Shown piece by piece: positions 27,684 to 58,563 of a stretch of DNA of 64,000 nt. The position numbers and the translations under genes were made by a program. The notes beneath the pieces are model-generated. The model did not search any database. It was not told the origin of the DNA and saw only the letters and a program-made list of their open reading frames with translations. Every line of letters begins with the position of its first letter. Positions within the stretch are counted from its first letter, which is position 1. The stretch covers positions 124,001 to 188,000 of IMG/VR virus record IMGVR_UViG_3300030419_008158; one strand, given 5' to 3'.

Positions 27684-27697
27684 TTAGCCCTCCCAGA

Positions 27698-30600: not shown

Positions 30601-30955
30601 CTTTAACTGAATCTGCTGCTGTTCCGTCGTTGTTTATGACTTCAAGATCTCCATCAGACTCAGACCAGATGTAGTTTCCAGCATCTCTAAAAAATAGTTT
30701 AGCGTCTCCGGTCGAAGCGCCTACTGTCGTGTCGCCTGTGGAGTCATTAAAAGTAAGATCAGCCGCACCTCCAAATGCGCCCCCGTTATTGTACTGGTAT
30801 TGTGTGTCTGACCCTGCAACGCTTCCTGCGGAAGATGCAATTGTAATAGAATCACCAGAGCCGCTTGTAAGCGTAATTCCAGACCCAGCAATCAAGTATG
30901 ATGATCCATCTGTTAAGTGGGTCAAAGAACCCGACATACTTCCGATTAGTGCCAT
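27698..30955 (-). CDS. Tail-fibre-like protein (1085 aa) with internal duplication
   Basis: Beta-repeat composition; C-terminal NIYTGDLHLQNDRGNWTVIEEENYL domain of the type seen at phage fibre ends. Confidence 0.75.
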   Translation of the reverse strand: MALIGSMSGSLTHLTDGSSYLIAGSGITLTSGSGDSITIASSAGSVAGSDTQYQYNNGGAFGGAADLTFNDSTGDTTVGASTGDAKLFFRDAGNYIWSESDGDLEVINNDGTAADSVKVTSTAGGVIIKAGKSGAGVLLLSASHADGGVKVAAGTGDVDINSDDAVTVDAVGAISIDAGAASNFTTSAGALTLAGESLDVDATGGAFNIAGTSASTVTTSGGALSLDGQTGVNIQENGTSVITISDARAVAVANATTVDIDGSGAISLNSSAAAINIGNDDVDQAINIGTDGTRTITIGEAADSTVTIKSLGGTLTLDGTGETVDLNSAALDIDASGAITIDGSSTVSIDAAGATNLTTTSGALTISGSAAGNLQFGNTLDIDSVGAMTIDSEAGISIDAGAASNLSTSAGALTVHGAGGINIGTTSDVAIDVDASTLDIDASGALTIDGASTVSIQGGGATDLQTSSGALTLAGESLDIDATSGAFNIAGTSASTVTTSGGALNLDGQVGVNIQEDGTTVIAVTNDREVAIGGVTLASDEYFAVSGSIGGKYTGSGVATFRGDTFVSGVLYTGQVFATKMSGSHTKLTDGTSAFIAGSNITITTGSSGAVTISASGGGGSVAGSDTQYQYNNGGSFGAAADLTFNDSTGDSTVGASTGDAKLFFRDAGNYIWSESDGDLEVINNDGTGNDSLKLTSTAGGVIINAGKTGAGVLLLTSSHAAGGITITAGTGDLDINSDDAIDIDAHGSIAIDSESTISIDGAGATNLSTSSGALTLAGETLDIDATSGAFNIAGTASSTVTTSGGPLKLDGQTGVQIQEDGTTVIGVDSDRNVAVGNVTNPEDVYFYVSGSVDSKHNGESHGAALFGGDVVISGSLLGGWSQGYTGGSELHMAGSPLVMASPDSIANTNPVSDAILFVSGVRTPLYGGMQFGYQEEGEKARAIFDSDVVMSGTVRGGYTSPTGGSMLNLRADLTVLGSSTVMLGGQYGGPGSDTSMFVSGSKTGSSGVSVFGGRLITSGNLLPGVDNSLNLGSATNRWANIYTGDLHLQNDRGNWTVIEEENYLTLRNNNNGKLFRLLMEEITD
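28460..30823 (-). repeat. Internal duplication of about 200 aa (copies near 30823-30215 and 29095-28460), plus a third partial copy near 29570-29370
   Basis: SVAGSDTQYQYNNGG...GASTGDAKLFFRDAGNYIWSESDGDLEVINNDGT occurs twice almost identically; ALTLAGE.LD.DAT.GAFNIAGT...LDGQ.GV.IQE.GT occurs three times. End points are approximate. Confidence 0.85.
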
Positions 30956-30970
30956 TTTATCTCTCCAATG

Positions 30971-33900
30971 TTATTCATTTTCGTCTAGCGGTATGAGTGC
31001 CATTTTGAATTTTTTCCCTGTAAGGTTGTTGACTACGCAAAGATAATCAGCTTCCTCAACTATTGTCCAGTCTCCCCTATCATTCCTCAAGTGGAGGTCT
31101 CCAGTGTAAATATTACCGAATCGTCGACTTGGTGCACCTAAATTCGATCCTAAATCTGCACCCGGTAATATTGTTCCGCTAGCAACGACATCGCCACCAA
31201 ATAATGATGTACCTCTTGTGGACGTTGATGCAGAAGAAGTCGATCCTGACACATAGAATGCTACATCAGATCCTACTGCTTCGTTAGTAGAGGAAGCCGC
31301 TCCTCCAGAAAGGATGAGAACTTGGTCTGTTGAACCATCAACCAAAAGAGCGTTTGCTTTAAGTCTAGACTCAACTCTAAAATCTGTTGCTGCACCAATT
31401 TCATTCACTACCACACCTGAGCTGGAAATATCAAGTGCGCTTCCATAGCGATTATTGATCAACATTCGTGAATTAGGACTTCCGCCTCCAAACCAGCTAA
31501 CTCTATCAGTTGTATGGTCTACTGATAATGCCAAAGGATCGCTATTAGTTGCCAAGTAAAATCCACCGGAGACGTATAAATCACCCCCAAAGACTGATGT
31601 CCCTCTATTAGCAGATCCAGCATTATCTGCTGTACCTGAAACGTAGAAGTTGACGTCAGCTCCAGCTGCTTCATTATAAGATGTTGCCCCTCCACCCGAC
31701 AGTATCAGAACCTGGTCTGATGATCCGTCAACTAAGAGAGCGTTTTCTTTAAGGTTAGACTCAACTCTAAAGTCGACACTAGCTCCTTGCTCGTTGAAAA
31801 CAGCAGCACCGTTAGATGCAAAGAATATGTCAGCATCTCCCGGAGTTGCCGAAGTTGTTCCAATAGTAAGCGAACCAGAAGTTGCAATAACTTGATTTGC
31901 AGGTCCGCTCCACCCTACCGCATCTGCGACCCCTCCTCCAGATGAAGCTATCGTCACAGCTCCGGAGGATCCGGTTGTTATGGTTACATTCGAACCAGCA
32001 ATAAGATAGGATGTGCCGTCACTTAGGTGGGTGAGAGATCCCGAAAGAGCTGGAGCAGTAACAGCTCCGGAAAATGTAGATCCAGTAAGAGTTGCGATTA
32101 CCGTATTGTCAACTGCCAGCTCTGTTGAATCTATTTTCAGCCCGCCGCCAGACTTCAGATCAGTGCTAAATGTAGTCCCACTTAGATCTAGACCATCACC
32201 AGCAGTGTACTCCGTGTTAGTGTCTGCTGAGGTGATCGTCACAGCTCCAGATGATCCGGTTGTTATTGTAACATTAGATCCGGCAATCAGGTATGAAGTT
32301 CCGTCTGAAAGCTTAGTTAGTGATCCTGAAACGGCGGCACTGGTGACTGTAGAAGCGTGAACAGTGCTGGCATAAACAGATCCTGAAGAGTATAGATCGC
32401 CTCCAAAAACTGCTGTTCCTTTTGTTGATGTACCTCGAGAACCGATTGCGCCTGAAACAAAGAAGGCAATATCTGCGGCGTTCTTCGGTTGCATTGCTCC
32501 CTCATGAAGCCCTGAACCTGACAGGAATATAATTTGTCTATTTAGAGAACCCCAGTGAGAACCTATTCGGAACATCTCCTCAGGGGCTGATCCGTTGTGA
32601 GTCTTGAAAACTAAGTCGTTGCTGCTGCTTATGTGCATTATGGCGCCGGTGCTACCCTCAGAGCCTATAAATGCTACTGTCGAATCATTTGAGTTACTTT
32701 CTCTCTGTAGTGAAAGCGTTGGAGCTGACTCCTTCAAGTGAAGCAAAGAAGAAGGTGAATTTGTACCAATACCTACCCTGTCTGAACTTCCTTGAACATA
32801 TAGAGTATTGTCATCTCCATCGGTTCTAACTTGGAAGTCAACATCTCCACCATCTCCGATTTTTACGATATCCTGACCGGCCTCAGATACTGTAATAAGT
32901 TGTTCACCACCTGCAGTAATCCCAATAGAATCTTCAGCAAATTGTATGAATGTATTGGAGTCAGTATCGCCACTGTGGTAGATGTACTCGCTTACATGTA
33001 TATCTTGTCCATGCAGTGTACCTGAAATAACGACATCACCACCAAATACCGCGGCCCCTCTAGTAGAAGTACCTCGTGATCCAACTGTACCTGAAACGTA
33101 GAAGTTGACGTCATCGCCGGTTGCCTCATTGTAAGATGTTGCTCCTCCACCCGAAAGTATTAGGACCTGATCGGTAGAGGCATCAACCTTTATGGCATTA
33201 GCTCCGGACCCACCGCTAGAATTGACAACAAAATCTACATTTGCAAAATCACCATTGACGATTAGTTGACCACTGTTATCACTTCCCTCCGAAACGGTAA
33301 TGACAGCATTTCCGCTGTCTTCCTGAATTTCTAAAGAACCTCCCCCAGCACCTCCAGTTTGAAGAGCTTTTAGAATTACACTTTTGTCACCCGATTTTGA
33401 AATACTAAGAACGTCGTCAAGATGTATAGTTCCCGATGATAATAGATCGCCTCCAAAAACAGCAGTCCCCGCTGTGGAAGAATCTTTAGAACCTATTGTT
33501 CCGGAAACAAAGAAGAACGCGTCAGACCCAACCGAATCTGCAGTATAAGTCATCCCTTTTCCGCCGGCAACTGAAAGTGATGCTGTCGTAACAAACTCTG
33601 CGGGAGAAGGAACGTTAAAGCTACCTGATGTTACAGTGCCACCAGTTGAAGCAATTGTAAGAGCTCCACCGGCACCAGCATCACTTAGAGAAATACCAGA
33701 CCCAGCTGTAAGAACTCTTTCATTATTTAGCGAACCTGTGGCTGAAAGAACAATGTATGTTGCACTTGGGTCACCTGATCCACCCCCAGATCCAGCAGCT
33801 GCATTAATAGTCACAGCACCCGACGATCCAGTAGAAATCGTAATGTTATCGCCGGCGATTAGATATGGTGTGCCGTCTGTCAACTGTGTAAGAGATCCAC

Positions 33901-36900
33901 TTATACCATCATCTGCTCTAATCTGTCCCTTGAAGTGTGTTCCGCCGGTGGCACCGGTCATGAACAGTGTACCGGGGGTGTTTAGTGATATTGATCTATT
34001 TGCTACACCACCGCTACCTGTTAGCCACATTGCGCCGGCTGCACCATCATCTAAGTCTAAAAAGTCTATTTGCCCAATGCTGGAACCCAGCTTCAGAGAA
34101 GAGCTGGCAAATACTTTTACAGGACCGTGTGGATTTCGAACGATAGCATCGTCACCAGAAGGAGGCTTCAGCTCCATTGTGCCGGTTACTTCCAAACCGC
34201 CGTCAATTTTGAGAGGTGATCCGCCGTGGAGAGTTCCTGATATTACAACATCTCCACCGAATACAGCGACACCTCCTCCGGATCCGTCCTTAGACCCTAT
34301 GGTTCCCGATACAAAGAATGATGTGTCTGTAAAATGTTTGGGATCTACACTAGTGGGCGCGCCGCCAGAAAGTATATAAACCTGGCCCCCGTGTGATGCA
34401 GATGTCATCAAAAAGTTTCGATTGGCCCCGCCAAAACCACTTCCGTAGGTTGGCATAGCCATCTCTGTCACCAAAAATGAAGCAGGACTTTTAGCTAGAG
34501 ATCCGGTCCCTAGACCTATCATTATTGATCCTGCGCCTCTATTTTGAATGTTTACAGAATTAGCACCACCCACAGCCGGCAAAGTATCTTTCGAGCGTAA
34601 ATTGATATGGAAGTAAGCATTACTGTCATCATTATCATTTATAAATTTAATGCCGCGATAATCGGAGGTTGACTGTGCTGAATTGTCTATGAAAAGCGTC
34701 CCGCTGGATAATAAGTCACCTCCAACTACAGTCGTTCCTCTAGCATTTGATGTACCCTTCCAGTCTATTGCGCCTGATATAAAAGTCGAAATATCGGCGC
34801 CCATAGAGGACGGTATGCTACCGCCTTGAATTATGTTGACATCTGCTCTGTGTGCCAGGTGTGTACCCTCTATGACTGAACTGACTCCGCCGTAAAGTGT
34901 TCCAGAAATAACAACATCGCCCCCAAAAGCACTCACGGCTGCTGAGTCTATTACATCTTTTTTCCCTTTTGAACCACTGACAAAGAAATAAAGATCTGAT
35001 CCTTCATGATTTGCAGTGTGTGTAAATCCTTCACCACCCGCTAGTGAAAGGGATGCCGTTGTTACAAACTCTCCCTGCCCAGGAACGTTAAAGGATCCGG
35101 TTGTAACTGTGCCGCCTCCTCCTCCGCTTCCAACTTCAACTTCACCGCTTTCGTTCTTGAAATATAGCTTTGTTACACCGGAGTCGTCTTTACCGTAAAG
35201 CACAACAGCACCATCAGGTATTGTACCTGGTGCGGAAATCTCTTCAAGATACATGGCGCCAGAGACAACAACATCACCACCAAATAATGAAACATTGTGA
35301 TCATCTCCTCCTTTGCCTCCCACGGCGCCTGAGACAAAGAAGTTGACATCCATGTATTCTGATTCGTTAGGAGAATTTATGCCACCTCCTGATAGAATTA
35401 ATACCTGATCCCACCTGTTGTATTGTGAGCTCGGGCCTCCCAAATATATGATGTCACTGTGATCACCCTCTGACTCTGACAAAACAAGTCCGGCCTTGCC
35501 TCCAGCCTCTATGCTGATTTTATCATCAGAAAAATGAATTTTTGTGTTTGAGTCCCCAATTCTACTGACAGTGTTTTGGACTTCTATGCCGTTACCGTTT
35601 GTTATTCTAACTTTCTCACTGCCGTCCACATTGAATAGAATGTAGCCAGTTCCGCTGTTGTCACCAAAATGCATATTGGTGTCATCTGCCAAAGAACTAG
35701 TAATAGCTGTTACATGAAGGGCAGTTTCTGCATAAAGCGCGCCGGAGACAACAGTATCGCCTCCAAAAACTGCTGTTTTGCCAGTTGCCTCTCCCTTTTG
35801 ACCAACTGACCCGCTAACAAAGAAAAACGCATCTGCTCCGGATGCGTCTGCTGTATGACTGAAACCAAGACCACCAGCAACTGATAGAGATGCAGTGGTC
35901 ACAAACTCTCCCGGTGATGGAACGTTAAAGCTACCTGTCGTGCTACTTCCACCGCCACCGCCACTACCTATTGGATTTCCGTTCCCATCATACAGGGTTC
36001 CGCTAACAACAACATCTCCACCAAAGACCGCAGTCCCTCTATCTGTAGCAGAATTTTTTGACCCCCTAGATCCAGAAATATAAAAGTTGGTATCATCGCC
36101 TGTTGAAGCGGATCTTCCATTTCTGTTCTGGAACCTTAGTTGATCAGCAGTAAAATCAAGTACTGTTTTACTGCCTGATTCTTGTGTTCCCCAAATAGAG
36201 CCAGAAATAACAACGTCACCACCAAAGACCGCGACTCCCGTGCTATCTTTGCCCCCAGAAGTTCCTGATACGTGAAAGAATGTGTCACCACCAGGTGAAA
36301 GCTCGCCAGAAGAGTCTGATGTTTGAAACTGAATATAGTTGTGTTGTCCGCTGACCTTTATAATTCCTGCGGAGTCTTTTGAGTTTACAACAAAATCTTG
36401 CAGTGATCCGTCAGCAGAATCTGTGGGAGGTGTTCCGACAACCATTGCACCGCTGACCATTACATCGCCACCGAAAATCGATGTACCCCTAGTTGATGTA
36501 TTTCTAGATCCCATAGACCCGGATACCCATACATGAGCATCTAGGCCCAATCCGGTTGCACCGGCAGTTTCACCAATAGCAGCTGCAGCAACTCCGGAAT
36601 TTGATCCCAAAGCATAGAGCGTGCCACTTATGACTGTGTCGCCGCCGAATAGCGATGTAACATGTGAATCTGTATGTTTAGCGCCGGCGCTTCCAGAAAC
36701 AAAAAATGCTACATCTTCTCCACTTGACTGATCAGCAGAATGCCCACTACCACCGGAAAGAATTAGAACCTGCTCGTTCCCTGATTGTGCGATTCCCTTG
36801 ATCAACTGTTTACCCAGAGCATCTGCATAAACAATAAAATCAACATCATTTGCGTTGTTGTTTATGTTGATAGACTTTTGACCAGAATCTCCATCTAATT

Positions 36901-38041
36901 GTATAACTACAGTCCCATCAGCTTGTATTTTTACATCATTATCTTGAAAATCAATTCTTGTGTTAGAATCAGATAAGTGAGAAACATACTGTGAAACTAT
37001 TAGTTCACCTCGAACTGTGAGGTCATCGCCAACGTCTAGATCATCTGTAATGGTGAGATCATCAGTATAAAGTGCGCCGGAAACTACGACGTCACCCCCG
37101 AAGACCGCAGTCCCTTTTGTGGAGGATCCCTTGGAGCCTTGCGATCCAGAAACATAGAATGCAACATCAGATTGAGCGGCTTCGTTAAAAGATGTAGCTC
37201 CGCCACCAGACAGGACTAAGACTTGATCAAATTTATATGGATTGCCTGAACCTAGCCCGTAGCTCCCTAGCCATACTTTTTGATTCGGACCATCGGCAGA
37301 AAGAGCTGTAAGTGACTCTGCGTCTAAGAAAAATTGACCATCTGCAGGAAATGCTATTTGTGTAGTCAGATCTCCGATGTGTCTGACGCTTCTAGCAATA
37401 TCGATTGAAGCCGCCCCTGCCCCGTAAACCTCCAAGACACCGCTTGTTACAACATCACCACCAAAAACTGATGTTCCTCTAGTTGATGTTCCTTTAGAGC
37501 CTACAGCCCCAGAAACATAGAATGCAACATCATTTTGGGAACCTTCATCAAAAGATGTAGCTCCGCCGCCCGATAGAATTAAAACCTGGTCTTTGCTAGC
37601 ATCAACAAAAAGTGCATGTGTTTTATTTTCTGACTCGACCCTAAGATCATTTTCTGGATCTCCCTCGCCCGATTCATTGACAATTAGTCCTTCATGAATC
37701 GTGGCACTCTGAGAAACAATAAGTGATCCGGATACAGAAAGAGATCCTGTGGCGCTAAGATCAACCTCGACGACCTGTCTTTCCGCATACATTGTACCAG
37801 AAATGACTACGTCTCCACCAAAAAGCGTGACATCTGTTCGTGTGTTTTTACTTCCTGTCACAAACATAAAAACGTCTGTGCCGACATTTGCGAGAAGTGC
37901 AGAGTTGCTTAGAGCTTCTCCCTCATAGCCAGAAGAATCAGATGCACTAACAACCAGAATGCTGGGCTTTCCAGATTCAGATCCGGATCCGATTATTTGT
38001 GTAAGCCTGACCTGACTAGCTCTAAAATCTTTAGTTGCCAT
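30971..38041 (-). CDS. Giant tail-fibre-like protein (2356 aa)
   Basis: About 17 copies of D..F.VSG..G.K.....G..(V/L)FGGD..(V/S)SG; YTAGDGLDLSG fibre motif; C-terminal NIYTGDLHLRNDRGDWTIVEE domain. Confidence 0.8.
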   Translation of the reverse strand: MATKDFRASQVRLTQIIGSGSESGKPSILVVSASDSSGYEGEALSNSALLANVGTDVFMFVTGSKNTRTDVTLFGGDVVISGTMYAERQVVEVDLSATGSLSVSGSLIVSQSATIHEGLIVNESGEGDPENDLRVESENKTHALFVDASKDQVLILSGGGATSFDEGSQNDVAFYVSGAVGSKGTSTRGTSVFGGDVVTSGVLEVYGAGAASIDIARSVRHIGDLTTQIAFPADGQFFLDAESLTALSADGPNQKVWLGSYGLGSGNPYKFDQVLVLSGGGATSFNEAAQSDVAFYVSGSQGSKGSSTKGTAVFGGDVVVSGALYTDDLTITDDLDVGDDLTVRGELIVSQYVSHLSDSNTRIDFQDNDVKIQADGTVVIQLDGDSGQKSININNNANDVDFIVYADALGKQLIKGIAQSGNEQVLILSGGSGHSADQSSGEDVAFFVSGSAGAKHTDSHVTSLFGGDTVISGTLYALGSNSGVAAAAIGETAGATGLGLDAHVWVSGSMGSRNTSTRGTSIFGGDVMVSGAMVVGTPPTDSADGSLQDFVVNSKDSAGIIKVSGQHNYIQFQTSDSSGELSPGGDTFFHVSGTSGGKDSTGVAVFGGDVVISGSIWGTQESGSKTVLDFTADQLRFQNRNGRSASTGDDTNFYISGSRGSKNSATDRGTAVFGGDVVVSGTLYDGNGNPIGSGGGGGSSTTGSFNVPSPGEFVTTASLSVAGGLGFSHTADASGADAFFFVSGSVGQKGEATGKTAVFGGDTVVSGALYAETALHVTAITSSLADDTNMHFGDNSGTGYILFNVDGSEKVRITNGNGIEVQNTVSRIGDSNTKIHFSDDKISIEAGGKAGLVLSESEGDHSDIIYLGGPSSQYNRWDQVLILSGGGINSPNESEYMDVNFFVSGAVGGKGGDDHNVSLFGGDVVVSGAMYLEEISAPGTIPDGAVVLYGKDDSGVTKLYFKNESGEVEVGSGGGGGTVTTGSFNVPGQGEFVTTASLSLAGGEGFTHTANHEGSDLYFFVSGSKGKKDVIDSAAVSAFGGDVVISGTLYGGVSSVIEGTHLAHRADVNIIQGGSIPSSMGADISTFISGAIDWKGTSNARGTTVVGGDLLSSGTLFIDNSAQSTSDYRGIKFINDNDDSNAYFHINLRSKDTLPAVGGANSVNIQNRGAGSIMIGLGTGSLAKSPASFLVTEMAMPTYGSGFGGANRNFLMTSASHGGQVYILSGGAPTSVDPKHFTDTSFFVSGTIGSKDGSGGGVAVFGGDVVISGTLHGGSPLKIDGGLEVTGTMELKPPSGDDAIVRNPHGPVKVFASSSLKLGSSIGQIDFLDLDDGAAGAMWLTGSGGVANRSISLNTPGTLFMTGATGGTHFKGQIRADDGISGSLTQLTDGTPYLIAGDNITISTGSSGAVTINAAAGSGGGSGDPSATYIVLSATGSLNNERVLTAGSGISLSDAGAGGALTIASTGGTVTSGSFNVPSPAEFVTTASLSVAGGKGMTYTADSVGSDAFFFVSGTIGSKDSSTAGTAVFGGDLLSSGTIHLDDVLSISKSGDKSVILKALQTGGAGGGSLEIQEDSGNAVITVSEGSDNSGQLIVNGDFANVDFVVNSSGGSGANAIKVDASTDQVLILSGGGATSYNEATGDDVNFYVSGTVGSRGTSTRGAAVFGGDVVISGTLHGQDIHVSEYIYHSGDTDSNTFIQFAEDSIGITAGGEQLITVSEAGQDIVKIGDGGDVDFQVRTDGDDNTLYVQGSSDRVGIGTNSPSSLLHLKESAPTLSLQRESNSNDSTVAFIGSEGSTGAIMHISSSNDLVFKTHNGSAPEEMFRIGSHWGSLNRQIIFLSGSGLHEGAMQPKNAADIAFFVSGAIGSRGTSTKGTAVFGGDLYSSGSVYASTVHASTVTSAAVSGSLTKLSDGTSYLIAGSNVTITTGSSGAVTITSADTNTEYTAGDGLDLSGTTFSTDLKSGGGLKIDSTELAVDNTVIATLTGSTFSGAVTAPALSGSLTHLSDGTSYLIAGSNVTITTGSSGAVTIASSGGGVADAVGWSGPANQVIATSGSLTIGTTSATPGDADIFFASNGAAVFNEQGASVDFRVESNLKENALLVDGSSDQVLILSGGGATSYNEAAGADVNFYVSGTADNAGSANRGTSVFGGDLYVSGGFYLATNSDPLALSVDHTTDRVSWFGGGSPNSRMLINNRYGSALDISSSGVVVNEIGAATDFRVESRLKANALLVDGSTDQVLILSGGAASSTNEAVGSDVAFYVSGSTSSASTSTRGTSLFGGDVVASGTILPGADLGSNLGAPSRRFGNIYTGDLHLRNDRGDWTIVEEADYLCVVNNLTGKKFKMALIPLDENE

Positions 38042-40086: not shown

Positions 40087-40284
40087 ATGAGTTCCGCTAT
40101 GAAAAAAAATGATTTTGATCAAAACAGTGAAAAAGATAAGTCTCCAATAAAGAAAAAAATGAGAGAAGCATCTCTTCAAGAGATTGGAGAAAAACTAGGT
40201 CTTACAAGAATGAGAATATGTCAACTCGAAAAAATAATACTAAGAAAGATTCGAGAAAGCAAAGATTTAGATGAATTTAAATAA
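40087..40284 (+). CDS. Stand-alone sigma70 region-4-like HTH mini-protein
   Basis: SLQEIGEKLGLTRMRICQLEKIILRKIR matches sigma region 4.2 (TLEEVG..F.VTRERIRQIE.KALRKLR). Confidence 0.6.
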   Translation: MSSAMKKNDFDQNSEKDKSPIKKKMREASLQEIGEKLGLTRMRICQLEKIILRKIRESKDLDEFK

Positions 40285-40311
40285 AAAAAGGCGGTGGATA
40301 AATCCACCGCC
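40283..40311 (-). terminator. Rho-independent terminator
   Basis: GGCGGTGGA-loop-TCCACCGCC stem (40290-40311) followed on the minus strand by 7 T; lies between convergent genes. Confidence 0.85.
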
Positions 40312-40341
40312 CAAAAACCATTTTACTTATGTTTTTAGAGT

Positions 40342-40545
40342 TTAGCTTTTTCTAGCCTTTTCTTCCGAAATGGTCAGTTTGACAAGATCAGCTGATCTTC
40401 CCTTGAGAAGCCTTAGGGCTCTACGTGCTCTTACTCCTGCAGCAGAATTTCCTTTTGCATTCTTGACGACATCTGTCTCTGCTGCATCAACTAGAGCCTT
40501 TACTTCGGCCCATGCCTCCAAGATTGTGCTATTTCCATTACTCAT
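40342..40545 (-). CDS. Histone H1-like nucleoid protein (Hc1-like)
   Basis: KGNSAAGVRARRAL matches the GNKAAGxRARK hallmark; AGGAG SD. Confidence 0.7.
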   Translation of the reverse strand: MSNGNSTILEAWAEVKALVDAAETDVVKNAKGNSAAGVRARRALRLLKGRSADLVKLTISEEKARKS

Positions 40546-40553
40546 AATTACTC

Positions 40554-40826
40554 CTAGGTGTAAATCTTAACATTTGGATTTTTTTCCATAGCATCAGCGC
40601 CAGATTCGATTTTATCGTTCTCATCGAAAAAAGCATTGATTTTGTTCATGATCTGAACGTTTTCTAATTCTAGTGAAAGAAGCTTGATTATGTAAACAAT
40701 TTGTGACTGGGATACACCAAAATCCATAATTTCTCTTACAATTTCTCTTGCTTTCATTCTGCTTAGAACATCGTCCCGCTCATCTTTTGATAAATTTTTA
40801 ACTTTTTCTTTTCCATTCTCACTCAT
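40554..40826 (-). CDS. Hypothetical protein
   Basis: In-operon spacing; 4-nt overlap with the upstream gene. Confidence 0.65.
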   Translation of the reverse strand: MSENGKEKVKNLSKDERDDVLSRMKAREIVREIMDFGVSQSQIVYIIKLLSLELENVQIMNKINAFFDENDKIESGADAMEKNPNVKIYT

Positions 40827-41287
40827 GAAATTACCTCTTGCCGACTAAATGATTCGACGCGAAATCTATCGGGACCCAAAAATCTCAATATTTTTCCAGT
40901 AGTTTTTTCGCCCTCGATCTCTGTGTCTAGCGTGAGAACATATTCCCATTTTTTATTTTCCAGAATAAATCTCGCCATTTGATAGTCACAAAGATCTAAA
41001 CTATAGCTTTCCAAGAGTTCAACTATTTGCCCGGGAAGAGAAATAGCAACATCTTTTATTTTTTCAACTGTTACTGACTCTTCTTTGCCCACGATAATTT
41101 CAGACTTGCAAATGTCATAAACTTTATGAACTGTTCCACAATTATTACACTGTGCATGATTAGGAAGCACTGTATCAGATGCGTCAAGCTCGCTAAAGAC
41201 TACAAACTTATGGTAAACGGGATCTTTTCTATCTCTGTATTGAGGAAGAATACAGTGACACTCAACAATATGTTTCGTCCCATTCAT
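40823..41287 (-). CDS. Hypothetical protein with possible Zn-binding site
   Basis: ECHC and CNNC...H motifs. Confidence 0.65.
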   Translation of the reverse strand: MNGTKHIVECHCILPQYRDRKDPVYHKFVVFSELDASDTVLPNHAQCNNCGTVHKVYDICKSEIIVGKEESVTVEKIKDVAISLPGQIVELLESYSLDLCDYQMARFILENKKWEYVLTLDTEIEGEKTTGKILRFLGPDRFRVESFSRQEVIS

Positions 41288-41493
41288 TTTGAAAAAAGAT
41301 TGCTAATAGCTCCAACTGTTCCGTTTGTGCTGGATACTTGCGCTGCTTCAACTTTACCAAAAAGATCCTTAAGTACTTCCTGGTCCAATTGTGATCCTGC
41401 AGCTTCAAGTATCAAATTTTTTACTTGATTTGACAGAACTTCGTTTCTTTCAATAACTAGTCGACAGACATCTCTTTCTTTTGCAGAAGACAT
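41284..41493 (-). CDS. Hypothetical protein (69 aa)
   Basis: Start moved to ATG 41493 behind a strong AAGGAGG SD. Confidence 0.65.
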   Translation of the reverse strand: MSSAKERDVCRLVIERNEVLSNQVKNLILEAAGSQLDQEVLKDLFGKVEAAQVSSTNGTVGAISNLFSK

Positions 41494-41506
41494 TTTTTCC
41501 TCCTTA

Positions 41507-42655
41507 TCATTCGTATGTGACAATTGACCCAATGTTTTGTAAAATATTTTCGATACTCTCAGAGCATCTAACAGCTGCTTTATACGTTGAAATAGGCACA
41601 TAAAAATTGAAATTATTATACTTTAATTTCATAACTCCCGACCTAGATGTAAAACGAGCCAGTGCCAAAAGAGTCTTGACTCTATCAATTGTAACTCCTT
41701 TGAGATAACTTAGGTCGGCTCCAAACTCTACGCTGATCTTTCTATCTTTTGCAGAAGATGCACTTTTAATAAGAATGCTCGACATTTCCATGGAAATTTC
41801 TATTTCGTCTGCTAGTCTTAGATTTGTTAGTTCACTGCCGATATCAGCACTAGCACATACAACACCAGCATTTTCAAAAAATAAAAAATTGGAAATACAC
41901 CATTCGTCAACAACAAATGGAATGCACATAAGTTTGTCGGGGTAATTAGTTGCTAACGTGTTGATCACATCCGGAAGAAATCCCTTCGCAGCAATTACAA
42001 CTGTTTGTCCTTTAGAATGATCTAAAATATTATGAATCTGTGACACTTTTTCTACGAATCCATCGACAGCAAATACAAATGCTTTTCCTGAAAAAGAAAA
42101 GTCACTTTCAAGTTTAGAAGAAAACCCCGGGGCAATATTGCCTTTCTGTGTAATACCTTCAATACATTTTATTTTAGTGCCGAATGAGTTTGCTTCCAAA
42201 AGATTGACTTCACACCCGCAGCCGCCCATATAAAATACTTCTTTTGCTATTTTACTGGATAGTCCGGAACCGCCCCAAGAGCTCACAACATTAATTACAT
42301 CATTTTCGTAGACTTTTCTTTCTTCTGTAATTTTTTCAACTTCACCAACAAGCATCATGCAGGAAAGCAACGCAGAACCTCCCTGCTTAGCTTCTGATGA
42401 AAAGAAAGAACTAAGCATGATGTTTCGTATGGATTTATCTAGAGAGTTGTTTCTAGACCACTCTGATAATATCCTAGGAAATTCTAAGGGCGTGCATGTA
42501 GACACTCTATCACCCAGCATTATGGTTCCGTTTCCAGAAATGCATTGGGATAAAAAATCTGACAGTTCTTTCTTTGCTTTTTTTATGGATGAGCTAACAT
42601 CACGTGAAAAATGAATAGATGAACTAGTGTATTTCTTTTGAGAAGGCTGATACAT
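41507..42655 (-). CDS. Degenerate, shortened GroEL/Cpn60-like protein
   Basis: Collinear similarity by eye to GroEL equatorial, intermediate and apical segments (see findings); the GDGTTT ATP motif is replaced by GGSALL. Confidence 0.65.
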   Translation of the reverse strand: [382 protein letters not shown]

Positions 42656-42881
42656 CGAAGTGATTGGGTGCCTCGACTAACTTATTTATGAAAGTACATG
42701 CAGAATCATAAAGTGCTTCTTTTTTGGACATTCTATTCAATTCAACCGCGTATCTAACGATGCCGCTTATAGTGCCTAGAGAAAGCAAAACTATGGAAAG
42801 TGTAACACTTTGAGAAAAAGAAAGTGCTCCACATGCAATTAGAGTTTCTGAAACAAACCCTTTCATTAGCTGTCTCTCCAT
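42624..42881 (-). CDS. Small membrane protein
   Basis: Two hydrophobic stretches in the N-terminal half. Confidence 0.55.
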   Translation of the reverse strand: MERQLMKGFVSETLIACGALSFSQSVTLSIVLLSLGTISGIVRYAVELNRMSKKEALYDSACTFINKLVEAPNHFDVSAFSKEIH

Positions 42882-44797
42882 AAGTTGTTGCTGGCATACG
42901 TAAGAATTTCTTCTGCAGAATCTTCGTTGTATCCATATTGTTCTATCATAACTTTCACCATTTCGTTATATTTCTTCTGTTGATCTTTGTCTCTAGTTTT
43001 GGACTTGGTAACAATTCTAGAAATATCTCGTACAGAGTTAATCAAGTATGACTCAATCGCTTCCTTGAGCGGTTCGTAAGATCTAAAGTCTACTTTTTCT
43101 CCTCTTCTCATTTTGGCGAACATATAAGCAGTGACATCCGACCTAAAGCCATCCCTAGAAGATCCTGTAACTCCAATTTGCTCTTCTATTGAAGCCATAA
43201 ATCGATCATCAGGCTTTCGAGTCTCTTTTGTGACTCTATCTTTCATCTTTTGTTTTGTTGTGTAGGCTTCTGCGTTGTCAAGATAGGTGTCAAAGAGTGA
43301 CTGTGCCTGTTCTTCGTAGGCGGAAATAAATGCTTTTGCAATTTCTGAATCCAGCATTTTCAAATACTCTTCCCGAAGAACTTTTCCAATAAGCTCGAGA
43401 CATTTTTGCTTGAATTCTTCGTCGGAAATTTGTTCTTTAACAGAATTTGTCAAGGATTCCATTAGTGATACCGGCGTAATCATATTTTTATCACTTTTGG
43501 CCAGTGCACCGTCCAAAGCCTTGGTTATAAATCTAGTCGATATGCCGCTCATCCCTTCTCTTCGAGCTTCTTCCTTTAGATCTTTGATGTCAATTTTTTT
43601 AACTCTGCCTTTTTCTACAACTTCTTCTCCATTGTAGATCTTCATTTTAGTGACTAGATCACACTTAGCAGACTGTTTAAGTCTAGACATGATGCTAAAC
43701 ATTGAAGCAATTCGCAGCGTGTGGGGCGCAATGTGTGCATCAAAATCTGATTGGCCTAGCATTTTTTCGTAAATTTTAATTTCTTGATCTAGTTCTAGGC
43801 AATAAGGTACATCTACTTTTACAACTCTGTCTAAAATTGCTTCGTTTGTGTGTTCACTTTGGAACCTATTCCACTCTGCTTCATTGCAATGAGCTAAAAT
43901 TACACCATCGAAGTGAAGCATATCACTTTTTCCGGGCGAAGGAATTCTTTTTTCTTGAGTCGCTGTAATAATTGTATGAAGAAATTCTATTTCATTTTTG
44001 AAAACTTCTACTAGCTCAACAATACCCCTGTTACCGACATTGAATGCACCGTTTAGAGAAAGAGCACGAGGGTCATCTTCTGCATATTTGTCAAGTTTTG
44101 ATATATCAACTGATCCTATCAAAACAGAAGTATCTTGACTGTTGGCATCCATGGGAGGGACAGAGGCTACGCCACGACGACCGCGCTGGGAAAATGTCGT
44201 CTCTTCAACCTCAAAATCCTCATATTTTCCATCCAACTGCTGAAGAAGGAGGTGGCGTGCAATAGGACTAATATCGCCATGGATTCTCACCCCTAGCTCT
44301 TTTTCAAACGTATCTCTTAGTGCTCTTGGAACCAGCTGTAATGGCTCTCCTCGATGAGGATCACCTTTCAAGTGGTAATATTTGTGTCCTTCTAGTGCAC
44401 TTTTTATATGCTCAGTAAGCGCAGATTTACCAGCCCCGACAGGCCCCATAAGAAGTAAAACTTGTCTACTTTCTTCTCCGTTGTGAGCCGAGCTGTGCAT
44501 AAAGCTCATGAGTTTTTCTAGCACTAATTCCATGCCAAAAAAATGCTCTTCAAAGTACTTGTAAACTTTGACTGAATTATTGTCAAAGATTCTACTTTTT
44601 CGCGGGTTGCTATCTGGCATTTTTTCAACACCGTACTCAATAATAGCATCGTAAAGTCGTCTATGTGCAGACTTTACAACACTAGGATCTTTGGCAACTT
44701 TTTCCAAGTAATCGCTAAAAGTACCTTCAAACTTTTTCTTTTTGGAACCTTCTTCTCTCTGTTCCTTTATTGCATCTAATAGTGTGTTTACAGACAT
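42866..44797 (-). CDS. prkA: PrkA/YeaG-family AAA+ protein
   Basis: FFGM, GPVGAGKS Walker A, NVGNRGIVELVEVFKN, AHCNEAEW, AILDR, APHTL. Start moved to 44797 (GGAG SD). Confidence 0.93.
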   Translation of the reverse strand: MSVNTLLDAIKEQREEGSKKKKFEGTFSDYLEKVAKDPSVVKSAHRRLYDAIIEYGVEKMPDSNPRKSRIFDNNSVKVYKYFEEHFFGMELVLEKLMSFMHSSAHNGEESRQVLLLMGPVGAGKSALTEHIKSALEGHKYYHLKGDPHRGEPLQLVPRALRDTFEKELGVRIHGDISPIARHLLLQQLDGKYEDFEVEETTFSQRGRRGVASVPPMDANSQDTSVLIGSVDISKLDKYAEDDPRALSLNGAFNVGNRGIVELVEVFKNEIEFLHTIITATQEKRIPSPGKSDMLHFDGVILAHCNEAEWNRFQSEHTNEAILDRVVKVDVPYCLELDQEIKIYEKMLGQSDFDAHIAPHTLRIASMFSIMSRLKQSAKCDLVTKMKIYNGEEVVEKGRVKKIDIKDLKEEARREGMSGISTRFITKALDGALAKSDKNMITPVSLMESLTNSVKEQISDEEFKQKCLELIGKVLREEYLKMLDSEIAKAFISAYEEQAQSLFDTYLDNAEAYTTKQKMKDRVTKETRKPDDRFMASIEEQIGVTGSSRDGFRSDVTAYMFAKMRRGEKVDFRSYEPLKEAIESYLINSVRDISRIVTKSKTRDKDQQKKYNEMVKVMIEQYGYNEDSAEEILTYASNNLWRDS

Positions 44798-44850
44798 ATT
44801 ACAAATCTCCAGCGCCATGGCATCTTATAAAACATAGGAAGACGATAAAA

Positions 44851-46152
44851 TCAAATCTCCCATGGCTCTCCCTCTATTATAGTATTTAAGACTACATTTT
44901 TACCCCATAAACATTTTGAATGTTCGACAGTATGATCTGCGTAGTCTAAATCAAGATCTCTTCCGTCGTGCTCATGCCGAAGCATAAGCGTACCATCCAT
45001 ATCGATATCATCTACTTTAATGACAGGAAGACGAGAATCAGCAATAGAGTCACACATGTGTGCTTTAACTTTTTTCCACCCATCATCATCTGAAATTTCA
45101 TCAATTGTAAATGCGTCTTTTTTTTCACTCCAGCTAAACAGATTTAGCTCATTGCAAAGCTCTTCGGTCAAATACTGTCTAACAAAACTAATGTCATTTC
45201 CTGACTCTCTTGCGACAAAGCATTCTTCTAGGCCGTGCTTTTCTTTGATGTCTTGAAAAATTACAAACCCCAAATGATACGGATTTAACCTTCCAATATG
45301 AGGCCTAATAACAGCATTGTGCATTCGCAAAAATGGAATATGATACTTGTCTGGTAAATTCAAATCGTGACATATTGTATAGTGCCAAAAAGAAGCCCAC
45401 CCCTCGTTCATTATTTTAGTTTGTATTTGTGGCATAAAATAATAAGCTTCATCTCTAACAATCTCTATTACATCACGTTTCCAGTCGGGCATTCTTGCAT
45501 GTTCTGAAATAAATCCCATAATATCACAGTCCGGCTCAAGAGGTGGACTGTCTAAGTCTAATAGAATTAAATTCCCTTCTTTGTCATGCTCTCTTAGCCC
45601 TTTATAATATTCGACCAATTCTTTGTGTGTTTTTCGCTCCGATCCGTCTCTATAGATCTGATACTGGAGAGCGTGACATGCATCAATTATTTCTTCGACT
45701 TTTTCTATTCCAATATAGGGATCTTCGACGTACTCTTGAATTCTTTTTTTAGCCTGTCTAAATCTACCGATCACAGAATCTGCTCTTGTATTTTTAAACA
45801 TTCGATTGTTTTTGAAAAAATCAGAGTGTCCGACACAATGAGCCATGATAAGAATTTGCAAGTAAAGAGGGTTTTCTCGCATAAGATATGCGATAGAAGG
45901 GTTGGAATTGATAATAAGCTCGTATGGAAGGCCTTCGGCACCCAAGTTATACATTTGATGTGTTCTTTCAAAAGACTTTCCGTAAGACCAATGATCGTAA
46001 TGTGTGGGCATGCCGTGATAAGACATATGACCAATCATTGAGTAATAGTCACAAACTTCATAGCTTATTGGGTACCAATCCAGCCCATACCCATTTGCGA
46101 TTTCAATAATTTTGTCATCCCATTCTTTCAAATCATCTACAGACCAGCTCAT
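44851..46152 (-). CDS. spoVR: SpoVR/YcgB-family protein
   Basis: GMPTHYDHWSYGK, YELIINSNP, AHCVGHSDFFKNN, TKIMNEGWASFWH, NPYHLG, LRHEHDGRDL. Confidence 0.93.
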   Translation of the reverse strand: MSWSVDDLKEWDDKIIEIANGYGLDWYPISYEVCDYYSMIGHMSYHGMPTHYDHWSYGKSFERTHQMYNLGAEGLPYELIINSNPSIAYLMRENPLYLQILIMAHCVGHSDFFKNNRMFKNTRADSVIGRFRQAKKRIQEYVEDPYIGIEKVEEIIDACHALQYQIYRDGSERKTHKELVEYYKGLREHDKEGNLILLDLDSPPLEPDCDIMGFISEHARMPDWKRDVIEIVRDEAYYFMPQIQTKIMNEGWASFWHYTICHDLNLPDKYHIPFLRMHNAVIRPHIGRLNPYHLGFVIFQDIKEKHGLEECFVARESGNDISFVRQYLTEELCNELNLFSWSEKKDAFTIDEISDDDGWKKVKAHMCDSIADSRLPVIKVDDIDMDGTLMLRHEHDGRDLDLDYADHTVEHSKCLWGKNVVLNTIIEGEPWEI

Positions 46153-47321
46153 TTTTCTTCTCCGTAGTTTCCAAACATTATCTTAAATGACTTCCATACA
46201 TCTTCTTTTTCTTTAATAGAGGTACATTTCATTGACCTTCCGACCAATTGTTTTAGGTGATTTGAAATTTTTTGTTCCTGAAACCATTCGGGTTCTGCTC
46301 CCGGTGTTATTTCACAGTAACCAAATAGTTGACAAATATCTCTAAGTTTCGTTGCAGCAGACAACATATCTTCCGTATCATGACCAAAGTTGTCCCCATC
46401 TGATGCATGGAACGCGTAGACATTCCAAGCAGACGGATGGTATCTTTGATTAATCACATCAAGTGCTTCATTGTAAGCAGTAGAGACTATAGTTCCTCCG
46501 GAGGATCCTCTTGTAAAAAATTGTTCTTCACTTACTTCTCGTGCTTCCATGTCGTGTGAAATAAAGACTATTTCTGTTTGATCGTATTTTGATCGAATAA
46601 ACTGATATAAAAGAAAAAAGAAGCTTCTTGCAAGAAATTTTTTCGGTTTGCCCATAGAGCCTGAAACATCCATCATCATCACAATGACAGCATTTGTATT
46701 TTCTTTCATTTTGGGCTTATAGTGTCGATATGTCAGATCATCGTTGTGAAAACTACCTTCTAGCTCTTCTATTTCTTCTCCGCCCTCTCTTTGTTTTGCC
46801 TTGAGTCTTTTTATTCGATTGATAGCTGATTTTTTCTTGTCTAGGCGTGGAATAATTCCTTGAGGTCTATAGCCAGTTCTTTTTAGTTTTTCTGATTTGC
46901 TTTGAGTAAAAGCTTTGCGCTCCATGTCAGGAAGCTCTAATTCATCAAAAAGATATTTTGCTAATTCGTCGAGTGATATTTCAACCTCGTAAAACTCATC
47001 GCCTCTTTTGTCACCGGCTTTTTGGGGCTTACCGTCTTTTGATTTATTTTTTTCTCTTATAATCTGGTCTCTTGCAAGATCTTTTCCAGGTGCTGATCCT
47101 ACATTTTTATTAGCCTCGCCACTACCGTAGACAAAACGATATTCCTTTATCCCTCTAACGGGTATTCGAAACTTCTTTTTTCCGTCTTGACCAATAATAG
47201 ATTCATCGGCAACAATATCATGAATTCCTTCACGAATTGCCTTTTCGATCTTGTGTTTGTGTCGTCGACGATCAGAAGCAGATCGATCTGCTGTAGTCTT
47301 ATGGTGAGAAAATCCTGACAT
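46149..47321 (-). CDS. yeaH: YeaH/YhbH (DUF444, vWA-like) protein
   Basis: DRRRH...IRE, IPVRGIKEYRF, MMDVSGSM, FISHD, GGTIVS, WNVYAFHASDGDN. Confidence 0.9.
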   Translation of the reverse strand: MSGFSHHKTTADRSASDRRRHKHKIEKAIREGIHDIVADESIIGQDGKKKFRIPVRGIKEYRFVYGSGEANKNVGSAPGKDLARDQIIREKNKSKDGKPQKAGDKRGDEFYEVEISLDELAKYLFDELELPDMERKAFTQSKSEKLKRTGYRPQGIIPRLDKKKSAINRIKRLKAKQREGGEEIEELEGSFHNDDLTYRHYKPKMKENTNAVIVMMMDVSGSMGKPKKFLARSFFFLLYQFIRSKYDQTEIVFISHDMEAREVSEEQFFTRGSSGGTIVSTAYNEALDVINQRYHPSAWNVYAFHASDGDNFGHDTEDMLSAATKLRDICQLFGYCEITPGAEPEWFQEQKISNHLKQLVGRSMKCTSIKEKEDVWKSFKIMFGNYGEEK

Positions 47322-52271: not shown

Positions 52272-53561
52272 CTATGCTCCACCACTGCACGACTCAGTTG
52301 ATAGATCGCTATCGTCGACTTCTATAAACTTTTCACTCTCGTGCTCTTCATCATCTTCTCTCATTCCCGAAACTTTGCTAATCATATCAGGAATCGGACA
52401 ATCACCAACATCAACTTCAAGAAACTTTTTTGCAGTTGCAGCACGTGCCATGGGAGCTGTCATCGACTTGTGTACAACAGTTGCAGCTGCAATTTTCCCC
52501 GGGTCACTATTTTTTTCTGCTTCCAGCAAAACTTTTCTTATAATTTTTCTAAGAACAGATTCAGACAGCATAAGATTTCTTTTCATAGTTTTTGTCTCTC
52601 CAATTGTACAGCTATGTGTGGGCTGGGTTGGCAATTCTCCTTTGGAAAATTCGTAGTTATATATTTCCAGCTCAGTACCTTCTGCGTTCTCAGAAGCCTC
52701 ATTATCACAAAGTTGAGCAACTCTTCGAGCATTTTCTGGATCGTCATCATAAAAGTGTATGTTATCGATGGAAGGATTGTGAATCTTACCAATTAGATCT
52801 CTCTTCGCTGATGCAGGATCACTGGGATTGAAATCAGCTGCGCCATAGACGACGTCAGCATTCGATCCGATTTCTGACGCCAAAAAATCCTGTATATCAG
52901 ATGCGTTAGTTGCAGGAACTTTACCTCCACCTAGTGTATCTAGATCGGTCTTTCCTTTTCTTGCTGTAACAACAGCGGTCATGTCGCCTGATGCTTCAGC
53001 ATCTAGGAACACATCTAGCATACTGTCTATTGGTTCTACTTCTGTGCCAATTGTACTTGATGGACTAAAGTCAGCAATGTGTATTTCGCCTGTTTTACCC
53101 TGGTCAAACATCTCTCGCCCGGCGCTTCGAATATCGTTGCTTATGTTGGGATTTACAACCAAACGAACATGTTCACCAGAAGGTATATACTTTTCTTTCC
53201 AGTCTCTATACTGCTCTGTGTCTAGAACAATCGCTTCAGCGTCATCTAGTTCATCATTGCTTCTAACAGTATTTCCTGATAGCCCTGGAGAGTTTACGTT
53301 TTTTTGAGCCGGCGTGCTGAGGTTTTTTACTTTTGATCCCACACGCGAATTTAGATTTTTTATGGGAATATACGATGAAGGGTCATCAGGGTCTCCACCG
53401 TTATATTCGACAGCTGCGACAAGTGTCGGTGAGGTGGTTACACCCAAAGTATCATCGAAATCAAAGACATGCAAATCTCTCTCCGGACTTTTTACTTGAT
53501 CCTCGTCCTGTTCTTGTAAAATTCCAGCTAGTTTACACCATCGATTGATAACTGCATCCAT
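52272..53561 (-). CDS. HAD-family hydrolase with N-terminal RWxKLAG motif and internal leader module
   Basis: VFDFDDTL, VTAR, FYDDDPEN; MDAVINRWCKLAG start; internal MKRNLMLSESVLRKIIRKVLLE. Confidence 0.8.
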   Translation of the reverse strand: MDAVINRWCKLAGILQEQDEDQVKSPERDLHVFDFDDTLGVTTSPTLVAAVEYNGGDPDDPSSYIPIKNLNSRVGSKVKNLSTPAQKNVNSPGLSGNTVRSNDELDDAEAIVLDTEQYRDWKEKYIPSGEHVRLVVNPNISNDIRSAGREMFDQGKTGEIHIADFSPSSTIGTEVEPIDSMLDVFLDAEASGDMTAVVTARKGKTDLDTLGGGKVPATNASDIQDFLASEIGSNADVVYGAADFNPSDPASAKRDLIGKIHNPSIDNIHFYDDDPENARRVAQLCDNEASENAEGTELEIYNYEFSKGELPTQPTHSCTIGETKTMKRNLMLSESVLRKIIRKVLLEAEKNSDPGKIAAATVVHKSMTAPMARAATAKKFLEVDVGDCPIPDMISKVSGMREDDEEHESEKFIEVDDSDLSTESCSGGA

Positions 53562-53590
53562 GAATAATTCTCCGAGTCACTTATGTTTGC

Positions 53591-53598
53591 TAAATATC
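53591..53598 (-). promoter_or_regulatory. GATANTTA putative late-promoter motif
   Basis: GATATTTA 29 nt upstream of ATG 53561. Confidence 0.5.
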
Positions 53599-53770
53599 TC
53601 TCCGGAGATAAATTTGACACGGCGAACGAGAATTTATTTAGTGACAACTCTGTGAAAACAGACAGCAGCCAAAATAATCACGGTGAATCATTCGCTTCTT
53701 TTATGAGTGTTTCTATATATTGTCGCAAACAATGAACCAGAGAGCTTTTTAGCAGCCTCTGTGATCAATT

Positions 53771-54835: not shown

Positions 54836-54866
54836 TTTTCTCCCTAGGGATTTACGTTGTGATGAC

Positions 54867-54874
54867 TAAGTATC
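54867..54874 (-). promoter_or_regulatory. GATANTTA putative late-promoter motif
   Basis: GATACTTA 31 nt upstream of ATG 54835. Confidence 0.5.
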
Positions 54875-54876
54875 TT

Positions 54877-56361: not shown

Positions 56362-56382
56362 GATTTTCTCCTTCACTAGCAG

Positions 56383-56390
56383 TAAATATC
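56383..56390 (-). promoter_or_regulatory. GATANTTA putative late-promoter motif
   Basis: GATATTTA 21 nt upstream of ATG 56361. Confidence 0.5.
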
Positions 56391-56405
56391 ATGCAAAGAA
56401 AAAAG

Positions 56406-58499: not shown

Positions 58500-58563
58500 G
58501 CTATGTTAAACATTATAAAATTGTCGAAACAGTAAAAAGAAAAATTATCTAATAGTCAAATGA

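Follow-up and report, generated by a model that had tools for sequence, protein, structure and literature searches.

Chaperonins are textbook ATP-driven machines. Their fold has also been reused as an assembly factor or protein-binding module, as in the eukaryotic chaperonin-like proteins BBS6, BBS10 and BBS12 and the Cpn60_TCP1-like domain of Fab1/PIKfyve, none of which has a canonical ATPase cycle, and a laboratory fragment of the GroEL apical domain, the minichaperone (residues 191-345), binds and assists clients without ATP. The chaperonins of Pseudomonas phages EL (gp146) and OBP, of Bacillus phage AR9 and of virioplankton work without a phage GroES; they are full-length (515-560 aa) and described as functional, EL gp146 having an ATP-dependent cycle (PMC7185714, PMC9598537, PMC5649160). 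Here we describe a phage gene encoding a 382-aa protein that is very probably a true, though much reduced, relative of GroEL among the group I chaperonins, and in which nearly all residues of the GroEL ATP site have been replaced or deleted. The gene lies in a stretch of 64,000 nucleotides (hereafter the window) from the IMG/VR virus record IMGVR_UViG_3300030419_008158, which is 284,429 bp long and rated complete by CheckV.

Compared with GroEL/Hsp60 (PF00118, TIGR02348), this mini protein has the same three-domain protomer in the same order and shares the signatures T261-L262-x-x-N265, F204, R395 and G410 (GroEL numbering), but it is without helices E, K-L and N-Q, nearly all ATP-site residues, the inter-ring segments and the C-terminal tail. 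The structure of EL gp146 matches the model of the mini protein (Z 16.8). The mini protein nevertheless differs from the chaperonins of EL, OBP and AR9 in having no ATP site and in belonging to a separate clade, and a chaperonin of the canonical type is encoded by a separate gene in the same genome. Whereas the minichaperone is an engineered fragment, the mini protein occurs naturally, retains the equatorial and intermediate domains in reduced form, and is partly polar in the groove between apical helices H and I. The BBS proteins and Fab1/PIKfyve are group II-derived and eukaryotic, belong to an unrelated context and have no direct evolutionary link to the mini protein. In the literature, the papers on full-length phage chaperonins and a survey of jumbo phages (PMC7824862) contain nothing on a shortened family without an ATP site or on its link to PrkA. 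What is new here is a chaperonin-fold family that stands outside the curated models, is of a different size and has no motor.

Homology of the mini protein to GroEL

The open reading frame (ORF) of the mini protein is intact, with an ATG start and zero internal stops (coordinates in Table 1). Its length and position, and the view that it encodes a shrunken and apparently ATPase-dead GroEL homologue, had been put forward in an original prediction made from the sequence alone; length and position were confirmed, and the homology is borne out by the profile, hidden Markov model (HMM) and fold evidence that follows. As a single sequence, the protein gave no usable match in Pfam, PHROGs, NCBIfam or the PDB sequences. 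It matched neither PF00118 nor any NCBIfam GroEL model and did not reach the curated sequence-model threshold of the Cpn60/TCP-1 family, and tblastn against 50,697 GenBank phages returned nothing usable. A profile of 17 relatives (40-75% identity) found the OBP chaperonin (6hdd, E 0.8) as its sole match among PDB sequences. When that profile was compared with the Cpn60 profile by hhalign, residues 129-276 paired with GroEL 155-305 (P 0.013), which is exactly the region that had been aligned by eye in the original prediction.

The profile of 17 relatives is too shallow, and a deeper one was needed. A profile of 140 full-length family members aligned with the Cpn60 profile at E 1.2e-15 (probability 98.6%, 367 columns), placing residues 10-378 of the mini protein on GroEL 2-461. 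The family HMM scored 79.8 bits on Escherichia coli GroEL (residues 153-412) and 57 bits on the canonical GroEL of the same phage. One of the longer family members, P0066, matched NCBIfam GroEL models directly (1.6e-11), with only 43 bits against cut-offs of 352-582.

The AlphaFold2 model of the mini protein has a mean predicted local distance difference test score (pLDDT) of 86.6. A Foldseek search of the PDB with this model gave 500 top matches, all at E <= 0.001, and the 50 that were listed are without exception chaperonins (best E 1.4e-17, template modelling score 0.72). Alignment with VIA-align placed model residues 11-382 on residues 3-526 of Thermus thermophilus Cpn60 (Z 19.7, 369 residues), the scores against group II chaperonins being lower (Z 15-16). 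The AFDB clusters and BFVD likewise returned chaperonin matches (E 1e-16 to 1e-18), and the ESM Atlas agrees. A chance match is excluded by the Foldseek E value and the VIA-align Z score against solved GroEL/Hsp60 structures. Structurally, the model comes closest to GroEL/Hsp60 chains in the GroES-bound open conformation (root-mean-square deviation 4.4-4.7 Å over about 365 residues, compared with about 13 Å for the closed conformation), a resemblance that may reflect the predictor rather than the protein.

Common descent with the Cpn60 family and possession of its three-domain fold (equatorial, intermediate and apical) are thus seen by Foldseek, VIA-align, hhalign and the family HMM alike, and the match to Cpn60 on which the original prediction had staked its claim was found at the levels of both profile and structure. 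The five stretches of the mini protein that it quoted (residues 87-102, 136-178, 195-212, 219-237 and 359-379) are all present, as are their five counterparts in E. coli K-12 GroEL (81-95, 162-204, 221-238, 247-265 and 501-521). The regions that it paired by eye agree with profile and structure. Its ungapped block of 43 residues is one residue off over about the first 34, and in this block the profile alignment pairs E166-G167 with E191-G192, a shift that leaves the homology unaffected.

The two ends of the chain are placed on different grounds. The N-terminal 135 residues alone give no sequence signal to Cpn60, and their assignment therefore rests on structure. At the C-terminus, hhalign placed the last 40 residues on GroEL 411-461, a placement that we rejected in favor of GroEL 491-524 on the evidence of the structure and of the longer family members. 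The preferred pairing, of residues 352-382 with GroEL 493-524, is the second-best profile alignment (P 0.03) and is backed by the structural alignment to GroEL 524-526 and by the end-to-end alignment of the longer members.

Retained and deleted segments

The mini protein is about 165 residues shorter than GroEL, and the secondary structure of its model follows the order of GroEL elements. According to the DSSP assignment of the model, the N-terminal equatorial part (residues 1-112) has the N-terminal strand and helix A, followed by the stem-loop hairpin at residues 44-53, by helices B and C and by a helix D that has been shortened. The C-terminal equatorial remnant consists of a hairpin, a final helix at residues 355-373 and a final strand at 378-381, with no C-terminal tail. 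Three blocks of GroEL have no counterpart: helix E (about 108-131), helices K-L (about 340-370), and helices N-Q with the adjacent strands of 476-490 (roughly 417-490). What has been retained is the equatorial, intermediate and apical order, the elements that form the ring (the strands at both termini and the stem-loop hairpin), the apical core and the hinge glycine, GroEL G410, which corresponds to G340 and is kept in 97% of the family, together with the D-R pair of helix M.

There are 49 longer family members, of 435-490 aa, that carry inserts of about 18, 32 and 17 residues exactly at the three deletion points. The profile of these longer members aligns with GroEL from end to end (2-526, E 9.7e-23). 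Since the longer and shorter proteins form separate clades and the inserts fall at the three points, the size classes reflect clade-wide deletions.

Loss of the ATP site and of the inter-ring contacts

In the profile map, the GDGTTT motif of GroEL is replaced by Q91-G-G-S-A-L-L97. The position of D87 is occupied by Ser94 (serine in 78% of the family), and those of T89-T91 by Leu, Leu and Ser, which are mostly hydrophobic across the family. The catalytic D398 is replaced by Thr328, at a position that is variable across the family, and G414-G416 by Leu, Lys and Tyr. The segment that bears N479, A480 and I493 in GroEL is missing, and by reading of the C-terminal alignment, where Val353 precedes the conserved Pro354, no acidic residue corresponds to D495. 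The longer clade exhibits the same replacements, with SGSGIIT for AGDGTTT. At K51/D52 an acidic residue persists, E58 in the mini protein and Asp in 87% of the family, the register being uncertain by one. As a set, the residues of the GroEL nucleotide site (D87, T89-91, D52, D398, G414-G416, N479/A480 and D495) are therefore not retained, and the replacements of D87, T89-91, D398 and G414-G416 are family-wide. The deletion of helices E, K-L and N-Q has removed the adenine and ribose side of the nucleotide pocket. The residue mapping thus bears out the loss of the ATP site that the original prediction had read from the missing GDGTTT, and it is well supported from the aligned sequences that the mini protein would be ATPase-dead in the GroEL sense.

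The inter-ring interface has fared similarly. The contact residues A109, S463 and V464 were deleted with their segments, and K105, E434, R452 and E461 fall on variable residues where the alignment is unreliable. Because the inter-ring contact helices E and N-Q have been deleted, double rings stacked back to back in the GroEL manner are unlikely, as judged from the alignments.

A family of reduced chaperonins

An exhaustive profile search that covered 1.84 billion representatives found 753 family members at E <= 0.001, 318 of them at E <= 1e-10, so that the family comprises at least 753 clusters at 50% identity. Two clades can be distinguished by size, which we call midi (435-490 aa) and mini (about 370-420 aa). 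In a tree rooted with canonical sequences, the family forms one clade that is separate from the canonical chaperonins, with a Shimodaira-Hasegawa-like approximate likelihood ratio test (SH-aLRT) support of 100; within it, the SH-aLRT support is 88 for the midi clade and 99 for the main mini group, to which the protein of the window belongs. That protein scores 381.9 bits against the family HMM and exhibits the features by which the family is recognized, namely the acidic residue at the D58 position (E58 here), R61, E88, F178, D198-G199, E202, T233, N237, P246, D324-R325, G340, and the position of its gene after PrkA and a small membrane ORF.

The family is recognized by none of the models in Pfam, PHROGs or NCBIfam, and in the source records its members are unnamed or called hypothetical protein. 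The nearest ESM Atlas clusters are also unnamed and are 94-100% viral. Searches of 185,579 species genomes and of the GenBank phages turned up no relative. A pattern-based locus search with the close alignment recovered three viral loci and none in the species genomes, the diverse alignment being too variable for a search of this type. By its sequence distribution, the family appears to be viral only.

The ratio of nonsynonymous to synonymous substitution rates (dN/dS) between the mini gene and its closest relative (75% identity) is 0.165, compared with 0.011 for PrkA. In this one lineage of uncultured marine jumbo phages, the gene is maintained under purifying selection, yet it is fast-evolving. 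Across loci, the mini protein is 49% identical where its neighbors are 81-90% identical, PrkA is 90-92% identical where the mini protein is 47-49% identical, and the mini protein has fallen to 24% where PrkA is still at 75%. A recent duplication of the phage's own GroEL was considered as the origin of the gene and found no support: E. coli GroEL outscores the phage GroEL on the family HMM, and the family has a long stem branch. One contig of 188 nucleotides from a marine metatranscriptome, the sole match in an RNA library, is 100% identical to window 42040-42220, inside the gene. This is a weak hint of transcription of the mini gene, for DNA carry-over is possible.

Canonical GroEL and the co-chaperonin

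Both near-complete genomes that were examined, that of the phage of the window (G000) and a second one that holds both proteins (G001), carry one normal GroEL elsewhere. The canonical GroEL of the window's phage has 537 aa, is encoded at genome positions 3967-5580, outside the window and about 160 kb from the mini gene, and has an intact GDGTTT; it scores 203 bits against PF00118 and 511 bits against an NCBIfam model. A canonical groEL, for which the original prediction had suggested looking in the rest of the genome, is thus present, but the groES named alongside it is not, since no Cpn10/GroES (PF00166) was found in G000. Flavobacterium phage immuto, which by its capsid protein ranks with the closest cultured relatives, has a groES-groEL pair, and there the family profile matches the canonical GroEL alone. 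The canonical GroELs of G000 and G001 share 71% identity, their mini proteins 39%. We considered the 154-aa protein encoded near the mini gene as a hidden co-chaperonin and saw no sign of a GroES-like fold, its model being poor (pLDDT 67, confident for residues 75-150 alone) and without a significant fold match.

Gene context

The gene order is constant in every locus with enough flanking sequence: DUF444/YhbH, SpoVR, PrkA, a small membrane ORF, the mini gene, three small ORFs and Hc1 (Table 1). The three small downstream ORFs measure 69-76, 154-173 and 80-91 aa across the loci, and in some loci an RNaseH-like ORF immediately follows the mini gene. The small ORF with two hydrophobic helices is found at the same place in 10 of 10 related loci. 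A chlamydial-type Hc1 is present in every locus that reaches that far downstream, and beyond it the close relatives have a divergent sigma-70 region 4 ORF and PhoH-PIN. Thermus phage phiYS40 and Ralstonia phage RsoM2USA likewise carry the PrkA module, and the family profile detected no mini-chaperonin anywhere in these two genomes.

Table 1. The mini gene, the parts of its product and the surrounding gene string, in window coordinates
Feature	Position	Strand	Basis or remark
Mini GroEL-like gene, 382 aa	41507..42655 (stop codon 41507-41509)	minus	ORF, AlphaFold2 model, Foldseek, VIA-align, hhalign, dN/dS
Residues 1-112, reduced N-terminal equatorial part	42320..42655	minus	DSSP of the model; hhalign map and gaps
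Residues 92-98 (G-G-S-A-L-L-S), counterpart of GroEL A85-G-D-G-T-T-T91	42362..42382	minus	Profile map; same in the longer clade
Residues 113-166, N-terminal half of the intermediate domain (helices F and G, two strands)	42158..42319	minus	Model, profiles, HMM
Residues 167-304, apical domain; helix H 205-213, helix I 228-237 (FLPDVxNTLxxN)	41744..42157	minus	Model, alignments
Residues 305-340, intermediate-domain helix M (313-339 in the model); D324-R325 and hinge G340 conserved	41636..41743	minus	Alignments
Residues 341-382, C-terminal equatorial remnant	41510..41635	minus	VIA-align, alternative hhalign alignment, end-to-end alignment of the midi clade
DUF444 / YhbH-YeaH family protein	46149..47321	minus	PF04285 1.9e-106; TIGR02877 1e-118, below cut-off
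SpoVR family protein	44851..46152	minus	PF04293 7e-123
PrkA/YeaG-type AAA+ protein, directly upstream in the gene string	42866..44818	minus	PF08298 1.8e-138, PF06798 4e-79; synteny
85-aa ORF, two hydrophobic helices	42624..42881	minus	Overlaps the start of the mini gene by 32 nt
69-aa ORF directly downstream, position conserved	41284..41493	minus	Longest reading, 41284-41601, would overlap the mini gene
154-aa conserved ORF	40823..41287	minus	Invariant C10, H11, C12, H26, C47, C50, H54, C60
90-aa conserved ORF	40554..40826	minus	Conservation
Hc1-type histone-like protein, 67 aa, last gene of the string	40342..40545	minus	PF07432 3.1e-08
Terminator-like hairpin, 10 pairs (7 G-C), T-run	40289..40312	minus	Directly after Hc1, closes the gene string

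Function and alternative explanations

The best explanation overall, to which we give about an even chance, is that the mini protein is a reduced GroEL homologue acting as an ATP-independent binding or assembly factor. It would not run a GroEL-type ATP cycle, and it would most likely serve a restricted range of clients as a holdase or scaffold, holding them by the remodelled apical domain; at most a single ring could form. Candidate clients are the adjacent PrkA module, a virion protein and a host protein. Isolated GroEL apical domains, which act without ATP, are the precedent for such a mode. The protein may act at the membrane, tied there through the co-translated two-helix protein, a site suggested by the membrane-embedded nature of the 85-aa partner. 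The specific mode of action is tentative. The original prediction had named three roles, a subunit of a hetero-oligomeric chaperonin, an ATP-independent holdase and a modulator of host GroEL, and all three are still candidates.

Several points weigh against this explanation. The reduced equatorial domain has kept a conserved polar set (D/E58, R61, E88, G93 and S94), so some equatorial site is still under selection; to judge from these residues, the domain may contain an unconventional ligand or phosphate site. Of the hydrophobic H/I groove, only part has survived: F204 persists as Phe in 91% of the family and L237 as Leu in 73%, and L259 is Ile or Val, but L234 has become His, Asp or Glu, and Y199, Y203, V263 and V264 are not conserved. 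With the groove partly polar, binding of clients or GroES in the classical GroEL manner is doubtful. Binding or chaperone activity of the mini protein is a prediction, and the residue mapping relies on profile alignments whose register is good to plus or minus one residue near K51/D52 and unreliable for the last 40 residues. Finally, constant synteny within one phage lineage does not prove a functional link to PrkA.

A first alternative, which we regard as unlikely, is that the mini protein is a non-catalytic subunit that co-assembles with the canonical GroEL of the phage, either in mixed rings or as a capping ring replacing the missing GroES, and so tunes the cavity, the allostery or the choice of clients. 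Both near-complete genomes carry one canonical Cpn60, and G000, the one checked for Cpn10, has none; the intra-ring contact elements, that is the terminal strands and the stem-loop, are retained in the model. However, the difference between 71% identity for the canonical protein and 39% for the mini protein is a large gap for an obligate partner, the two genes are about 160 kb apart, and everything that forms the GroEL inter-ring interface has been deleted. A dedicated client-specific binding protein fits weakly better than an obligate ring subunit because of that identity gap, the lost inter-ring segments and the partly polar H/I groove.

It is similarly unlikely that the mini protein is a dedicated partner of the PrkA-SpoVR-YhbH module and of the two-helix membrane protein; it might, for instance, be an adaptor or a platform for assembly, keeping the AAA+ machine or its substrates at the membrane. 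Such a role would be in keeping with an order that is preserved in every locus with enough flank, even when the mini proteins are only 24% identical, and also with the overlapping reading frames and the single terminator-like hairpin that closes the string. Against this, phiYS40 and RsoM2USA have the module and no such gene genome-wide, and no GroEL-like gene is known to us from the prkA operons of bacteria. PrkA is near-frozen while the mini gene drifts (dN/dS 0.011 and 0.165), and every member of the family seen comes from a single syntenic lineage, so that the linkage may be inheritance alone.

A bolder version of the ATP-independent factor would be a new ATP-free machine derived from a chaperonin, a single-ring or membrane-tethered open cage coupled to the PrkA AAA+ protein or to the two-helix membrane protein, with the handling of clients during infection driven by an external ATPase or by none; we consider this quite unlikely.

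More doubtful still is a decoy or poison subunit that binds the GroEL or GroES of the host and redirects folding capacity or blocks a host response. Fast divergence under purifying selection is frequent in host-interaction proteins, and GroEL-like interfaces have been partly kept. The residues of the GroES-binding groove are poorly conserved, however, the 185,579 species genomes, in which no relative was found, give no sign of recent capture from a host, and the fixed operon position beside PrkA and the membrane ORF would be left unexplained. That the gene is a decaying duplicate without present use, as the loss of the catalytic residues and of about 165 others and a divergence much faster than that of its neighbors might suggest, is very improbable and is largely refuted by the selection and conservation data: the frames are intact in hundreds of divergent clusters, dN/dS is 0.165, the protein that remains after the clean, clade-specific deletions is modelled with a confident fold, and G199, P246, N237, G340, D324 and R325 are conserved.

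A large natural family that keeps the architecture of GroEL without the ATP site and without a third of the chain would reveal what the fold is able to do without its motor. It provides a natural paring-down series for the equatorial domain, from the canonical form (about 540 aa) through the midi form (about 455 aa) to the mini form (about 385 aa), and it flags a conserved string of genes, as yet unexplained, in abundant jumbo phages of the sea. A family model would let annotation libraries name these proteins.

Neighboring genes and source genome

The PrkA-SpoVR-YhbH/DUF444 module of the window is complete (42866-47321, minus strand) and extremely conserved within the lineage. Ten of the 11 copies of the small membrane ORF, the copy in the window included, end in His. 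In the window, the His codon and stop of the 85-aa ORF (CAC TAG) coincide with a conserved Thr-Ser (ACT AGT) of the overlapping frame. Downstream of the mini gene, the 154-aa ORF is much better conserved than the mini gene itself, and its product, with the invariant cysteines and histidines given in Table 1, probably binds zinc; the 69- and 90-aa products were judged by eye from their sequences to be helical. On the opposite strand, adjoining Hc1, is a 65-aa ORF comprising little beyond sigma-70 region 4 (window 40087-40284, plus strand), which was seen only in the closer relatives (loci L003, L004, L008, L009 and L029).

The record encodes a T4-type major head protein, portal, large terminase, DNA polymerase, topoisomerase II and ribonucleotide reductase, together with a 2,356-aa protein that has a C-terminal endosialidase tail-spike domain; from these genes the source is taken to be a tailed jumbo phage. 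The phage is found in marine metagenomes. Among the best matches of its capsid protein in GenBank are those of Flavobacterium phage immuto (46%), an uncultured 484-kb phage (48%) and Microcystis phage Mel-JY01 (41%).

Elsewhere in the window, a long run of sugar and glycan genes extends over 278-26016 (minus strand), with a PD-(D/E)XK nuclease in between. It contains two family 1 glycosyltransferases (GT1), a GDP-mannose 4,6-dehydratase and two further epimerase/dehydratases, and also a methyltransferase, a radical S-adenosylmethionine (SAM) protein, a carbamoyltransferase and a GT2 protein. This glycan-synthesis block is unusually large for a phage. Large ORFs without a PHROG match (2,356, 1,085, 697, 499, 481, 477 and 429 aa, and others) occupy 26238-38041 and 52272-62966, both on the minus strand. 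The GC content is 0.42-0.47 across 26-38 kb, compared with 0.34-0.40 in the flanking stretches.

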